A stretch of 64,000 nucleotides of DNA from Orbicella franksi (lineage: Eukaryota): positions 14,446,001 to 14,510,000 of the forward strand of contig OZ116699.1 of NCBI GenBank assembly GCA_964199315.1, read 5' to 3'. A program made the translations under genes and the position numbers. Below the pieces are notes generated by a model. The model saw nothing but the letters and a program-made list of their open reading frames with translations. It was not told the origin of the DNA and did no database searches. Below, piece by piece: positions 1 to 31,900 of this stretch (the stretch's first letter is position 1; each line of letters begins with the position of its first letter).

Positions 1-535
1 TGCACAAAAAGTCATGTTAGGTAGATCACATGTTATTTTGGGGAGTCTCAACTGTCTACATGTATACATGTATACTCTGGTACATGTACATATATGGTTG
101 CCAAACAATGGTCCCTGTTGGCTGTGGTGGTATGCATTTCTTTGCTACATTTTTCTTATACCTACATGTACATATAATCATTACTTTTTGGCTGATTTGG
201 TTGAGCCATGGCGAGAGCAAATGAGCTTGATATGCTACCAAGCTTACCAAAAAGGTATGACTAGGTATTTACCATGCCCAAATTCAGCCAAGTGACCATA
301 TAATTTGTTGCCATGCTATACCAGGTCAGTGACTTGATATCACATGATATCAGGACAGTAGACACTTCTTCTGATTGGTTAATAGCAAATTTGTGTCTGG
401 TAATTAAAGGTACAGGCTGTATATGAGAATGAGATGAGCTTCATTGTGACATATTCTATAATTACGTAGTTCATTCCAGTTCTTTCTCTTTGGCAGCAAG
501 CTTCCTCTAATTTCTTTTGTTTTTACCAACTGCAG

Positions 536-3500
536 CTGATTGTCCAATGACGGCGTGCAACCGTGCAGACTTTGGTGGGGAAAGGTCGTACAAGAGTCCC
601 ATGCATTCCTTGATTTCTCCCAGATTTCTCAAATCTCATCCAGTGCCTGGCCACTCAACCATTGGGAGGGAGCTAGACCGTCGGCTTGTTCAGTCTCAGC
701 CAGCAACACACTCTGGATCTCCTAGGTTGGTGTGAACAGCTTCTATACTGTCTTAAAACTGCCAATCGTTTTTCTTAAGTACAATGTAGTTACCAGTAAA
801 TGTTGCACATACTTGTGTGTTTGGAAGGTGCTACAGCCTAAAGTAAATATGGCTTGTTTTAATATTGGACTCTTGATTGAGTCAGTTGTGGGTTTGAGCC
901 CTTGCGTGGGTAAGTTACTGTTACAATGTAAACCCTGACCAATTGCCTATTAACTCTACTAACAAGGAGTATACATTATGGGTATCAACACATTTTAAGG
1001 ACAACACAGGGGGAGCACGGATGGTGCAGTGGTGAGAGTGCTTGCCTCTCACCATTGTGGCACGGGTTTGATTCCAACTCGGTGCCATATGTGGTTGAGT
1101 TTGTTGTTGAGTTTGTTGTTGAGTTCTTGCCTTGCTCCAGGGTTTTTCTCAGGGTTCTCCAGTCTTCCTCCCACCACCAAAACCAACATATCTAAATTCC
1201 AATTCGACCAGGATAGATCTAGATGTGCATCCTCTCTAAATATTGTCGGTAATTTATTTATAACACAACAAAATGTTAGGGAGGAAATTGTGTTTGTCAG
1301 GACTATCGCACTATTCTTGGGAAGTATTCTAGCAATACTAATGTGTCACTTTGTTTTAAAGAAACTGATCAGGAGTTAAATGCAGATACTGATGAGCTAA
1401 TCCAATCCCTGCAATCTGAAGGGTCTCAACCTATATAATATTATACCACCTACAAAATTAATATGTACATGTAGCTTACAATGTTTTGACATGATCAGCA
1501 CTGGAAGTACAGCAGAATCCAATTTTTTGGACCTCTAAGTTGGCATGGGGGTAATGAAAACTGGTTCAAGAAGTCTACATGTAGAATTGCGATCTCTGGG
1601 ATAAAATTACAAGAGAAACAAATTTTTCTATAGGTTTAACTGAAACCCTTGGGGGGGATGGGGTTGGATGATTGAAGGTTTGAGAGAATTCCACAAGAGG
1701 GTTCCACTGTACTCCAGATACTTACAGCAGCCATGGGACACTTTTGACACACTTTTGTGGCCCAATTAGCTATTGTCTTCTTCAAGCGTTGCAAAAACTT
1801 CTTGATCACACCACTTGGATGCCTCAAACTTGAACGGCCTGTTTTGTTCAAAGGGATGAAATACTTGTATCTTAGTAGTGATGGAATGAATGAAAACAAA
1901 TGGTGTATGTAATGATTCTAGTTTGTGTGAATATCATGGAAGTTGATAACAGCTGGAACAAGTGAAGAAAACATTTGCCAGTCTTGTCAATTGTCTTTTC
2001 TGGCATTGGTAAAATTAAAACTTCATTCTACCGCATTGTTTGAAAGTGTTATTTCTTATATTTATTTATTGTTTTATTCAAAACTGCAGAACATATTTTC
2101 ACCAATGAATGAATTAAAGCAAAATTGTAAGTAGCGATAACAACCTATTCTATGACCTTGATCCAGTACAAAAGAACTAGGAACTTCCCAGTGTTGTCTG
2201 TTGTCTTTTTCGCAGTGCCGTTTGAAAGCCCCATTATTTTTGTAAGCTGATTTCTCAAAATACAAATCATTTCATCTGTGGTTGAATGAATCAAAATATA
2301 ATGGCATGTATGTAACCGCTGCAATATTCAGCCGCTACGAAAGAAATAGAACTTGTCTGCTCCTTGAAAACACATGATGTTCATACCATTAATGTTGTCT
2401 TTATAAAAGGGTGCTAACTTCCTTTCACAAAGTAACAAAAGAAGCAAACAATGACCAAGCTCATACATACCAACCCGAAGTCAAAGTGCAACCTATCGCA
2501 GCAAAATGTGCGTGTGCGTTAACCCCTTCCGGTTAACACGTTGTTGACCCATTAACTCCTTGAGCTTTTTGCCAAAAACGCAGTTTTTGGACATTTTGGA
2601 GATTTTTTAGGCTAGATATGGGCCAAATTAGCTCCAATCTACTTAAAAAGGCATTTGCAACATGACAGCATGCCTCTCTTTCTACTAGCATCACGTTTTA
2701 TGACAGTTTTGCTTGGGAACGCGCAGAAATCAAGGCTCATTAGGCTTTTCGATTTTTGTATTTTTTTTTTCACCTTTCCTTTTTCTCCTTTTTTTTTCTT
2801 TTTGCTGCTGGCAGTGATTGACCTTCTACTGGGCTTGCTTCCAGTTTAAAACATTCTGAGAAAGCATCATTGAGATGGGCAATTTTTGCCATGGAGTAGC
2901 CATGTGTAGTGGCAGGAAATTTTGCTCTGAGTTTTTCATGCAACTTTTTGAGCATTTTTGTGCAATATCTCTGGCTCCATTGGGCCGACCTCTCTGATCT
3001 GGGTATCATTGGAGAGATCTTTTCCTCCTGCAGAAGTTGAGCATAGATGATGCCAATTTTGGTCAAAGGTGAGGACGTCAGAAGTGGAAGAAAGGCCAAG
3101 GCTCATCATGGCCGCTTACGGCCGGCACAGGAGTCAATGGGTTAATGTGAATTTTGGTTCGCTTAGTTCTGAGCGGCACTGTAGCTCATGAAGAGCCTAC
3201 TCTCAGATCTTCCAATTAATTATTTTAATGACTCTCTTTCTATTTCAGAAGCATTGGACAGAATGGACTGTCTGCATTTCATCTCCAGCAAATTGATTAC
3301 CAAAGAAATGTCATTCCACCAGCAATGAGGTCTCCGACTCCTATGGAATTGTTTTTGTACAGATCACAAACAGCTGGGCTTCATAGAACTCCAGGTATGC
3401 TTTATTTATTGAGAGTTATTTGTGTAGTTACATAAATTATCCATACCTGTCCCACAGAAGGGATTTCTGACCTTCCACTCCCTCTGGAAATTCCAGTCTA

Positions 3501-28920: not shown

Positions 28921-31900
28921 CACAACTCAATACTGTATATCTTGTTCTTCTTGTAACAACTTGTTCTCGACTTAGAACTAAACCATACTTGGTATACATG
29001 TATTTGGTGACTGGGCATTAACATTGAAAGAGGGGTGCGAATTGCAGAGGACACTTCAAGGAATAGGGAATGTGTATTTTAATGGGGACACTGCCCTTTT
29101 TTGATGGGAGTTGCCTACTGGAGGGAAGATGCTAAAAACAAATCTTGGCCTCATTTCTATTGTGATTACAACTCTTAGTCACCCACAGTATACCAGACCG
29201 TGTATATTTGAAGGCTTCAGATTAGTAGGTAAAGCTAAATTTGTCCGTCAAATTTTTCTACATGCATTATTTAGTTCCATTATTGGTAGACCGCCCTTAC
29301 ATGTATTTTGTGGCACTCGTGTAAAACCACGATAAACTGCGTGTAGCCCCGCGCGCACAATTAGTACGCGCAACACGTACCCGGTCCGCGCTTTTTTGAA
29401 CCATTTCGTGAGGCAAGCTTTTAAACCATCAACAAGTTACAAGTAGTCCGACCATGCTACAGTAAACAAAAATTAAATGTAATCTTATTCGTAAAAATTG
29501 GGTTAATAGTTTACTGTATATATTACCAAATTCCTAGTGTCTGATATAAAAAAATGATTAGAAGAGTCGCAATTTCAATCAGTCAATGTCAGTAACCATT
29601 CAACACTCTGTATCAGTAAACACGCGCAAGTCAATATCTGTGATTTATATCAATGAGAAAAAGCCAAGCTAACTCACTAATATTTGTTTTTGTGCTTACG
29701 TTTCTCTTGATAGTTCTTTAATAGTGCTTGAACCTATCTCTTGTAATATGCGCTGTCATGAAGAAATCTAAAGGAAAGTGAAGAGGCAAAGCACGCTCCT
29801 AGCACTTGTTGCAAGTTTATGCTCAGTAATGATTCGATTTTAATTCGAAAACGTTTACTTATTATTTTTTTTTTTGTAGTAGCTTAAATAATGTTTTAGT
29901 CTGGTAAATAGTATCTTTAATCAAAAGCAATCATTATTGATACAATCTAGGTTCATCTTACAAAGAACAGTTTCGTGTAGATAATTTTGATTATTGAACT
30001 TACTTTTCAGATATGAAGACCTATTTGAAAGAGTTTGTTTAATCGACGAAAGCAGGAAAAACATCGTTGATTCTTAAAACAACTGGTTCATGCAGTCTGC
30101 GCCATAAAATTATTTACATTATCTATATGCCTGTTCAGTTATTGTGGCCCTGGAAAAATTAACAGAAAACTTGTTTGAAAACTGAAAATGAATAATTATT
30201 GAAACAACGAAGGCACCACCTGGAATTTAAGAAAAGGGGCGTCACCGTCGGAAATGGGCATTGCAAAATTTGTGATGTCAAGTATAAACAGATAAATTCT
30301 TTGTATAAAATCGTCGTATTTTCATAATCTTCTGTGTTTTTCAGATTTTCTGTAAATCTCCACCAGTTGGACCTTTCACAGCATTATCGTTTGCCAACGA
30401 TTAAGCTTACTTGTTAATTTGCTTGTGGGCGTAGACATTCACCTTAAGTCGATTAATCCTCATGCGAAATATTTTTTAAAATATTTGTTGATCGGATTTA
30501 GTTTGGTGCTAATCCACGCTAATCTATGCTGTAGCGACTGCTTATGTGAACATTTTAATTCATTTCTTTTTGTGATAGTCTTTTTGTGTAACTTGTTGCT
30601 TTCTCAACTGTACGATTCAAATGAGGCCAGTACCTTGTAAACTATAGGATTTGTACAGTATATTTCTGTAATTATAATATTGATTGCAATTTTCATTTTG
30701 TAGGACATTTCATTTGATGTTTGGTTAATGTTTCCTTATGCTCAGTGCTGGGAGAACGAGACACGTTTGATTCTTTTATTTTAAACTGCCAGGCAAAATT
30801 TTTAGTTGTTATATACCTTTGGGCTATTTTGATATTCTTGGGATTAGTTAATATTCATGTAGTGTAGTATTACCGAATAAACAGTAAAGTGGGTTTTCGT
30901 TTGCGGAATCTTCAGCTAAAGGAAAGAACCTTTGGTTTAACAACACGATTTTATATTAAACAAGTGGTCTGATCAGCTGAAGTGTAAACCTTTACCCAAT
31001 AGACCAACATGAAGAACTGTGCTTAAATTTGCTTTTCCTCGCTCTTCTTGACCACCCGAGCGTAAAGAAAATACCGCCCAGCCGGTACATCTTGTGAATA
31101 TCTTTTCTCTTCCAACTGAATAACAGCAGGTTTTAGGGCTATTCATTGTTTCTCTATTCCATTGATTATTAACCTAACGATAAATAGCAACAAAAGAAAA
31201 TCTTCCTTTTTTATTTACTTTGTCACAAGCGGCTTCCTATATGCTATTCTTTAGTTGGCTCCCCCAATTAGCGCCGATGTGGAAAGTAGTAGTGGTAATT
31301 GCTATGAAATCGAAAGCTTGCACTCTGGAAATGGTGAACACAGTGGCGGCGGAAAGTGAAGTTCTCGTTTATTGTTTTAATGTATACGAGTTGTAAAAGA
31401 AATGTTCGGAAAAAGCTTTTACTGTCATGAGAAAAGAAAAGCCGCATTCCCAGTCGAGTGTTTCGAACGCACCATTTCAGAATGTGAAGAGACGAAAACA
31501 GTAGGTTACATTAGTTAACGGTACCATCGTGTACCTCTAGCTAGACAGTGTTTTAAGCAGCTATGAAATTGATTGCAGGAGGAGATATGACAGTGGACAG
31601 GACGTAGGTTTCTCTTTATAATTTTCAGTTGTTTATTCTACATTATAAGTTTTATCCTTGCCGATGCCGAACACTGACAAAGTTTACGACCACGCTGATT
31701 TAAATTTTTTTATTTGTTGCTCCTGCAGAGTTTTCGCATTTCAATAAAGGACAATCTGCCAACTTTTAATTAAACTTCCTAAGAAAATGTTGAGTTAGAA
31801 GTAGCTCAAAAGAGAAGAAGATTGATTTGTTGTAATATTCATAAAGTACAGTAGGACGACGTTCTAAATACGTGTAGTTTCAATTTAAACTCGATTAAAA

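Follow-up and report, generated by a model that had tools for sequence, protein, structure and literature searches.

A palindromic octamer concentrated in CpG-poor DNA of the reef coral Orbicella franksi and its probable origin from excised TA-targeting transposons

The locus and its genes

The stretch of DNA considered in the present work (hereinafter, the window) spans 64,000 nucleotides of the Orbicella franksi genome (GenBank assembly GCA_964199315.1, contig OZ116699.1, positions 14,446,001 to 14,510,000 of the forward strand). It embeds the CpG-poor part of a BTBD16-like gene with a pogo/Tigger-type transposon in one of its introns, a second CpG-poor domain and, in CpG-replete DNA, two homeobox genes (Table 1). 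Most of the copies of the octamer TACATGTA, the subject of this analysis, are concentrated in the CpG-poor DNA. According to our data, these copies are probably the accumulated excision footprints (hereinafter, scars) of cut-and-paste transposons of the IS630-Tc1-mariner/pogo superfamily, which target TA and have CA...TG ends.

The BTBD16-type BTB domain (PF23998) is matched weakly, by one exon of the gene; exon-level open reading frames (ORFs) were used singly as protein queries, and the orthologous loci of other corals were retrieved via exon-sized protein fragments. None of the 25 copies of the octamer overlaps a mapped exon, and the ORFs that span scars by accident, used as protein queries, did not retrieve any match. 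The blocks 1-2.5 kb and 12.1-16.5 kb represent one gene body, interrupted by a nest of transposable elements (TEs). The intron carrying this nest (3398-12257) is 8.9 kb long in the window versus 389 bp in a relative (L030), and it is enlarged by the pogo element and by another element of 1.27 kb (3834-5100), whose inverted ends read CAGTAC.... The pogo element, whose ends read TA/CAG...CTG/TA and which is common to an independent assembly (L033), has no TACATGTA inside and a ratio of observed to expected CpG (CpG o/e) of 0.5-0.9; thus, it is a young insertion.

Abundance and distribution of the octamer

An exhaustive search retrieved 25 copies of TACATGTA from the window, in exact agreement with the 25 coordinates listed in a previous reading of the same DNA carried out without database searches (hereinafter, the sequence-only reading), which had also noticed no copy inside the 5.4-12.1 kb TE nest, where the search likewise found zero. 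That reading had set the chance expectation at a few copies per window. Dinucleotide shuffles give a mean of 1.16 copies (maximum of 6), and Markov models of the whole window expect 1.1-2.1 copies when of order 1-3 and 5.0 copies when of order 4. Among the octamers of the window, TACATGTA ranks third by frequency, after poly-T and poly-A, and first by over-representation. Moreover, 25 out of 54 ACATGT hexamers have T..A flanks (and are, hence, TACATGTA), with the A..T, C..G, and G..C flanked forms (AACATGTT, CACATGTG, and GACATGTC, respectively) being at chance level. All the copies, checked for location inside repeats, lie in unique sequence, no flanking consensus is visible around them, and the only adjacent or overlapping pairs are 57/65, 14679/14685, 27915/27921, and 15360/15371.

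The distribution of the copies is far from uniform, since 23 of the 25 fall within 10.5 kb (1-2500, 12147-16500, and 25900-29600; binomial P=2e-16), in which the CpG o/e is mostly 0.16-0.39 versus about 1.0 elsewhere; the 34 kb of the window with a CpG o/e of about 1.0 harbor two copies. The proposed confinement to two CpG-poor domains therefore stands, except that the copies at 28995 and 29298 are located at a domain edge, where the CpG o/e is 0.7-0.9. Markov models fitted to the CpG-poor domains only expect 0.3-1.5 copies (0.3-0.45 with the motif masked) versus the 23 counted, and thus the local richness in TpG/CpA does not explain the excess. Neither this explanation nor a uniform distribution, the two outcomes named beforehand as refuting the enrichment, was found. 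In CpG-poor DNA, the octamer reaches 50-80x the local Markov expectation and 30x the CpG-replete density, and 2.9% of the TA sites of the window's CpG-poor domains carry it.

The depletion of CpG suggests that these domains are methylated gene bodies. A copy of a miniature inverted-repeat transposable element (MITE) in the first of them provides an internal gauge of methylation decay: compared to seven paralogues located elsewhere, nearly all its CpGs have turned into TG or CA, and the loss of CpGs that the paralogues keep directly shows a methylation-type decay in the 1-16.5 kb domain. The MITE is about 350 bp long, has terminal inverted repeats (TIRs) GGGTGGCGAATGG...CCATTCGCCACCC, and is present in hundreds of genomic copies. 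The motif-free half of the window with the homeobox pair is a typical unmethylated developmental domain and not merely young DNA; its two homeodomain ORFs, 3.5 kb apart, represent a small homeobox cluster in CpG-replete DNA.

Table 1. Coordinates of the genes, repeats, octamer copies, and putative scars in the window.
Position	Strand	Feature	Remarks
1-16500	+	CpG-poor part of one BTBD16-like gene, 14 copies of TACATGTA	Cross-species alignment; PF23998 weak
530-747, 3247-3397, 12258-12422, 13053-13223, 13538-13666, 14599-14678, 15081-15148, 15276-15340, 16276-16360, and further	+	Mapped exons of the BTBD16-like gene	
57-88		Three copies of TACATGTA (57, 65, 81)	First two abut as TACATGTA-TACATGTA
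163-170		Copy of TACATGTA	Unique intronic sequence
1466-1583		Two copies of TACATGTA (1466, 1576)	Intron following exon 530-747
5428-12146	+	pogo/Tigger-type transposon, 6.7 kb	Intronic; TA duplication; termini CAGTAG...CTACTG
12421-12429		TACAGTGTA, putative mixed scar (TA+CAG+TG+TA)	Splice donor of the exon ending at 12422
12777-12789		Putative compound scar TA-CATG-TA-CTG-TA	Common to L039, decayed there to TGCATGTA
12829-12836		Copy of TACATGTA	L039 6 bp shorter (AGA-CA-ACC vs AGA-TA-CATGTA-ACC)
13801-14148		MITE copy	CpGs lost relative to 7 paralogues
14441-14448		Copy of TACATGTA	Intronic; present in L033
14679-14692		Doubled copy	At splice donor, G/GTA-CATGTA-CATGTA-G
15360-15378		Two copies of TACATGTA (15360, 15371)	Intact in L039; decayed to TACATGTG and TACATGTC in L034
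15421-15428		Copy of TACATGTA	L034 has plain TA; clean 6-bp presence/absence
25900-29600		Second CpG-poor domain, core CpG o/e 0.18-0.28, 9 copies in unique sequence	26017, 27789, 27915/27921 (doubled), 28062, 28319, 28427, 28995, 29298
32572-32579		Lone copy of TACATGTA	CpG-replete DNA, background level
42709-43146 and 46655-47248	-	Two homeobox genes, CpG-replete motif-free half	PF00046, E about 1e-21 and 1e-20
58316-58323		Lone copy of TACATGTA	CpG-replete DNA, background level

The same association was found outside the window. Genome-wide counts, which cover 497 Mb, gave a total of 62,522 copies of TACATGTA, about 8 per 64 kb, versus 23,843 of the reversed control; the copies cluster in domains of gene size. 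On chromosome 1, the copies are clumped (variance/mean of 2.6) into clusters that span 2-6 kb and contain 4-9 copies each (1.1-2.6 per kb). The density in a 200-kb sample taken without bias is 0.58 per kb in the bins with a CpG o/e <0.3 versus 0.04 per kb in the replete bins, and all the sequence sampled from the coral genome, when pooled, harbors 29 copies in 26 kb of CpG-poor DNA versus 7 in 186 kb of replete DNA. Out of seven loci chosen for an unrelated reason, the sole CpG-poor one (L026) is also the sole one with copies. The first 2.43 Mb of chromosome 1 contain two copies versus 81 in the next 0.55 Mb; this copy-poor start may be gene-poor or unmethylated.

Insertion of six base pairs at TA

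The comparison with paralogues and orthologues disclosed six or seven sites in a before/after state, that is, TA versus TA+CATGTA. The sequence-only reading had envisaged three possible states for the orthologous sites; plain TA was found at six or seven sites (a paralogous one included) and TACGTGTA at one, and a full transposon at none of about 15 orthologous sites. As regards the paralogues, in a repeat family with 101 genomic members, 98 have the consensus spacing (GATTGCG, or GATTACG in a sub-family) and two carry unrelated tandem duplications; the sole member with six additional base pairs is the L026 copy, located in CpG-poor DNA, which reads GATTA-CATGTA-TG versus GATT(G/A)CG (at L026:67, the exact placement of the 6-bp insertion is ambiguous). 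As regards the orthologues, the acceptor of exon 12258 reads TAG/ATG in eight taxa and TA-CATG-TAG/ATG only in L031 and L032. Two further sites are those at 12829 and 15421 (Table 1), and the reverse situation was found at L039:464, a copy of TACATGTA corresponding to a plain TA in the window. Moreover, of the two units stacked at 14679-14692, L039 has a single one, decayed to TACATATA, and lacks the second; the TA of the same site is represented by TATGTA in L032 and by TACAGTA+TGTA in L031. A possible seventh case is L034:102, 6 bp longer than the window and of ambiguous placement. The introns of L030 and L040 were too diverged or ambiguous for site scoring, and no abundant interspersed repeat serving as an insertion anchor was found in the sampled genome sequence. 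On the basis of these alignments, TACATGTA very probably originates by a 6-bp insertion at TA.

Stacked, variant, and decayed copies

Since each scar creates new TA targets, the frequency of re-hits should be close to that of hits per TA; the latter is 2.9% in the poor domains of the window, and doubled arrays account for about 2.5% of the arrays genome-wide, with ~97% being single units. Stacking also involves different scar types, as in the compound scar at 12777-12789; next to the orthologue of the latter, L039 has gained one further CATGTA at a TA. The copies at 15360 and 15371, being intact in L039 and decayed in L034, are older than the splits between the window and these two loci; the copies are thus not all of one age. 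In L034, a ~185-bp insertion with hAT-like ends CGGGGCTCGA...TCGAGCTCTG (L034:330-515) adjoins the orthologue of copy 15371. One-mismatch variants of TACATGTA are in excess by about as many as there are perfect copies, which implies roughly 10% mean divergence since their formation.

Other forms occur at anchored TAs, namely TATGTA (L032), TACAGTA (L031 and L029), TACTGTA (window 12783), and TACAGTGTA (window 12421 and L039). In L031, TACAGTA is a 5-bp indel, polymorphic with respect to L032; the donor at 12422 reads TACAGTA in L029 and plain GGTAT in L030 and L031. The terminal-base forms seen are, therefore, CA+TG, CAG, CTG, and CAG+TG, and the resident pogo has CAG...CTG ends beside TA. In the window, the half-scars TATGTA and TACATA are enriched 4.3x and 2.8x, respectively, and the 7-mers TACAGTA and TACTGTA weakly. 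Genome-wide, TACAGTGTA and its complement total 12,661 versus 5,549 of the reversed control (2.3x), and 8 out of 12 of these occurrences lie within 1.5 kb of a TACATGTA cluster versus 2.9 expected (P=0.003).

These data allow one to evaluate a first alternative, according to which the CATGTA units are made independently of transposons, either by hexanucleotide slippage or by a locally templated insertion during break repair. Arrays of (CATGTA)n with 3 to 5 or more units do exist, and longer arrays are more prone to extension (2.5%, then 4%, and then about 23%), so that beyond three units ordinary slippage is expected to take over; the ambiguous placement of the six base pairs at L034:102 and L026:67 also leaves room for such an origin. 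Nevertheless, the great majority of the arrays consist of one unit surrounded by unique sequence, and slippage acting on a unit cannot account for the unit itself. Local templating, for its part, would not be expected to yield identical six base pairs at unrelated TAs; furthermore, the insertions are always delimited by TA, and CAG/CTG-type scars occur at the same sites. Hence, we consider this alternative unlikely.

Orthologous loci in other corals

The association between CpG-poor DNA and TACATGTA is repeated at the orthologous loci L031, L032, L035, L036, and L039, with a density that varies greatly. L035 harbors 14 copies in 20 kb (1.0 expected), L031 and L032 have 9 and 8 copies, respectively, in 20 kb, L039 has 8 copies in 11 kb, none of them outside its CpG-poor part, and L036 has 2 copies in 2.5 kb. 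L037, although it includes a CpG-poor stretch of 6 kb (with one copy), has 2 copies in 20 kb, and L029, L030, and L034 together have 1 copy in 3.6 kb. The positions of the copies differ between the window, L031/L032, and L035. The independent assembly L033, 99.3% identical to the window, has every one of the eight copies found at 12.1-16.5 kb and shows no scar-type indel. A pattern of this kind, cumulative and specific to each lineage, is what a historical process would leave, and it argues against a required functional signal.

The latter possibility, also raised by the sequence-only reading in the form of a functional mark of methylated gene bodies, would imply that selection maintains TACATGTA as a binding site or a chromatin signal, marking or protecting the introns of constitutively expressed, methylated genes. 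The octamer is a perfect palindrome, like the sites of dimeric factors, several coral lineages show it enriched in the CpG-poor part of the BTBD16-like gene, and two copies (15360 and 15371) have stayed intact despite an intron divergence of about 18%. However, each lineage has its own set of positions, none of those of the window being common to L031 or L035, and the density is very low in the CpG-poor stretch of L037 and in L029, L030, and L034. The one-mismatch derivatives, about as many as the perfect copies, represent a neutral-looking decay; young TE DNA in the same introns is devoid of copies; the copies are stacked together and with scars of other types; and a flanking consensus is not visible. 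The mark is thus not supported, and a functional cis-element appears quite improbable.

Lastly, an origin as the end product of methylation, through deamination of TACGTGTA, TACACGTA, or TACGCGTA to TACATGTA and slippage to the doubled forms, agrees with the confinement to CpG-depleted DNA and with the two copies that trace to substitutions (L031:8329, facing TACGTGTA in L032, which is exactly such a change, and L007:2471, a background copy in replete DNA facing TTCGTGTA in a paralogue), but it is highly improbable as the main source, and the change of TACACGTA to TACATGTA proposed by the sequence-only reading is retained only as an occasional event, given that the full CpG decay of the window's 34 kb of replete DNA would yield 0.09 copies per kb versus the 2.18 seen, that 264 kb of sequence contain the precursor words 0-4 times, that the six or seven copies discussed above are demonstrably 6-bp insertions, and that the specificity for T..A flanks only is left unexplained.

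A possible excision mechanism

In principle, we can depict the following scenario for the formation of the copies as excision footprints. An element would insert at TA and duplicate it, giving TA/CA...TG/TA; at excision, staggered cuts would leave the two terminal bases of each end on the donor flanks, and end joining would then produce TA-CA-TG-TA, with a net gain of 6 bp at the former TA. The CATG insert would, therefore, derive from the transposon ends, and TACATGTA is the scar form keeping both 2-nt overhangs. Each scar would offer two new TA targets on which later events could stack (TACATGTA+CATGTA or +CTGTA), and the older scars would decay through ordinary substitution. A long-term hit rate of about 3% of the TA sites in permissive DNA would make TACATGTA the most over-represented octamer there. 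Potential source elements are plentiful in the genome, where the transposase matches number at least 150 for the pogo type (DDE_1) and at least 79 for the Tc1 type, with uninterrupted frames in many of them.

The sequence-only reading had listed Tc1/pogo footprints in transcribed introns among its possible explanations, and this one is supported by the gain of 6 bp at TA, by the absence of exon overlaps, and by the pogo element residing in the same intron. Its premise of a classic Tc1 footprint holds only in part: Tc1 and Tc3 cut with a 2-nt stagger, the scars most often published for Tc3 are TACATA and TATGTA rather than TACATGTA, and the canonical scars of Sleeping Beauty are TACAGTA and TACTGTA (bioRxiv 10.1101/659086). 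In the literature consulted, we found no paper linking the exact string TACATGTA to a footprint.

Several data weigh against an origin of the copies from excised elements or against the part assigned to methylation. An insertion of CATGTA is present in 0 of 53 indels between L031 and L032 and in 0 of 9 between the window and L033, where about 0.6 or fewer would be expected. No CATGTA was found at two conserved TAs of the ~500-copy, ~350-bp MITE in two pattern tests, whose power is low since the MITE copies are mostly in replete DNA and the family is about as old as the scars. Among about 15 orthologous sites examined, there is no element-bearing (occupied) allele, and 5 of the 14 copies of L035 fall in 1-kb bins with a CpG o/e >0.75. 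The half-scars TACATA/TATGTA, the commonest for Tc3, are just 3-4x enriched here, and thus both overhangs would have to survive repair in most cases. Furthermore, the methylation status was deduced solely from CpG depletion, and the precedent for an effect of methylation on excision concerns inverted repeat/direct repeat (IR/DR) elements with a 3-nt stagger and not Tc1 (PMC3680223).

The search for candidate elements gave the following results. In a first TIR scan, TA/CA...TG/TA elements seemed to lie mostly in replete DNA; nearly all of them turned out to be internal to longer inverted repeats, so that this impression was dropped. As for a possible model with cohesive ends (TA/CATG...CATG/TA elements, 4-nt stagger), no such element was found in 395 kb. 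The sole candidate TA/CATG-ended transposon at L016:5264-9295 was rejected as part of a longer inverted duplication running past the TA; this duplication (L016:5244-9315) has arms of >80 nt, nearly perfect (79/80 matched) and about 4 kb apart.

Confinement to CpG-poor gene bodies

Since replete DNA is at chance level for TACATGTA, the coupling between scars and domains is tight. The cause of this confinement to methylated gene bodies may lie in one or more of three non-exclusive mechanisms: (i) elements that landed in methylated DNA would excise far more often; (ii) integration would be biased to germline-transcribed, methylated chromatin of the type marked by trimethylated lysine 36 of histone H3 (H3K36me3); (iii) elements would be excluded from compact/silent developmental domains, e.g., that of the homeobox pair. 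A possible lead for the integration bias is the joint discussion of LEDGF, PogZ, DDE, and H3K36me3 in the literature. As regards excision, CpG methylation raises transposition >20-fold and increases excision for Sleeping Beauty, Frog Prince, and Minos, an effect that is absent for Tc1, Himar1, and Hsmar1 (PMC3680223).

A broader proposal, which we advance only tentatively and hold to be rather less probable than its negation, is that the methylated (H3K36me3-type) gene bodies of reef corals have been the near-exclusive landing and launching ground of Tc1/pogo elements. Landing and launching would be mechanistically coupled, through methylation-stimulated excision, chromatin-tethered integration, or both; elements would have come and gone at ~3% of the TAs of such genes, and the scars would represent a heritable map of germline-active chromatin, differing between lineages.

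Comparison with known systems and significance

The closest likeness is with Tc1/Tc3 of Caenorhabditis elegans (2-nt stagger), which share the duplicated TA target, the CA...TG ends, and a scar made up of the TA duplication plus terminal nucleotides; variant scars of this kind (TATGTA and TACTGTA) occur at anchored coral sites. The commonest published Tc3 scars, however, keep one overhang, whereas in the coral the form with both overhangs dominates by ~3:1 or more, and the scale is different as well, since the fixed copies number about 62,500 and are restricted to gene bodies poor in CpG. Sleeping Beauty/mariner (3-nt stagger) share the arrangement TA + terminal bases + TA, with TACAGTA and TACTGTA found at anchored coral TAs; they differ in that these 7-mers are weakly enriched in the coral, the dominant scar of which implies 2+2 retained bases. 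For the domain restriction, Sleeping Beauty provides a parallel, donor CpG methylation raising both its excision and, by the factor given above, its transposition (PMC3680223). No IR/DR-type element was identified in the coral sequence examined. The resident pogo/Tigger copy is similar for its TA duplication, its CAG...CTG termini, and its location in an intron of a scar-rich gene, but it is young and has not been excised; the scar-making family may be pogo or Tc1-like.

A different term of comparison is represented by the periodic A/T clusters (PATCs) that C. elegans genes expressed in the germline carry in their introns; PATCs are a periodicity of base composition, for which an anti-silencing role has been proposed. 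Like PATCs, TACATGTA is a non-coding feature enriched in the introns of broadly or germline-expressed genes; unlike them, it is a discrete inserted word with a neutral-looking turnover.

If the copies are indeed excision footprints, they would represent a dense fossil record of past transposon sites, with about 62,500 copies and a density of 1-2 per kb in permissive DNA, invisible to ordinary repeat annotation, and would testify that transposons passed heavily through CpG-poor genes in the past and hardly at all through other DNA. The contrast between methylated bodies and developmental domains, which is all-or-none, would tie transposon mobility to gene-body methylation or to germline chromatin. 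From a practical viewpoint, scars change splice-adjacent sequence, being located on donor GTA and acceptor TAG sites, inflate k-mer statistics, and may be used as lineage-specific indel markers for coral phylogeny.

Other features of the window and of the sampled genome

The 3' part of the BTBD16-like gene harbors nested inverted repeats (17549-21070), with arms of up to 261 nt that are 87-92% complementary; being CpG-rich, they are presumably young TE insertions. The independent assembly L033 differs structurally from the window at 21025. Finally, satellite-like tandem arrays were found in the random genome sample at L009:6175-9886 and L013:4137-7947, the latter with a period of about 570 bp.

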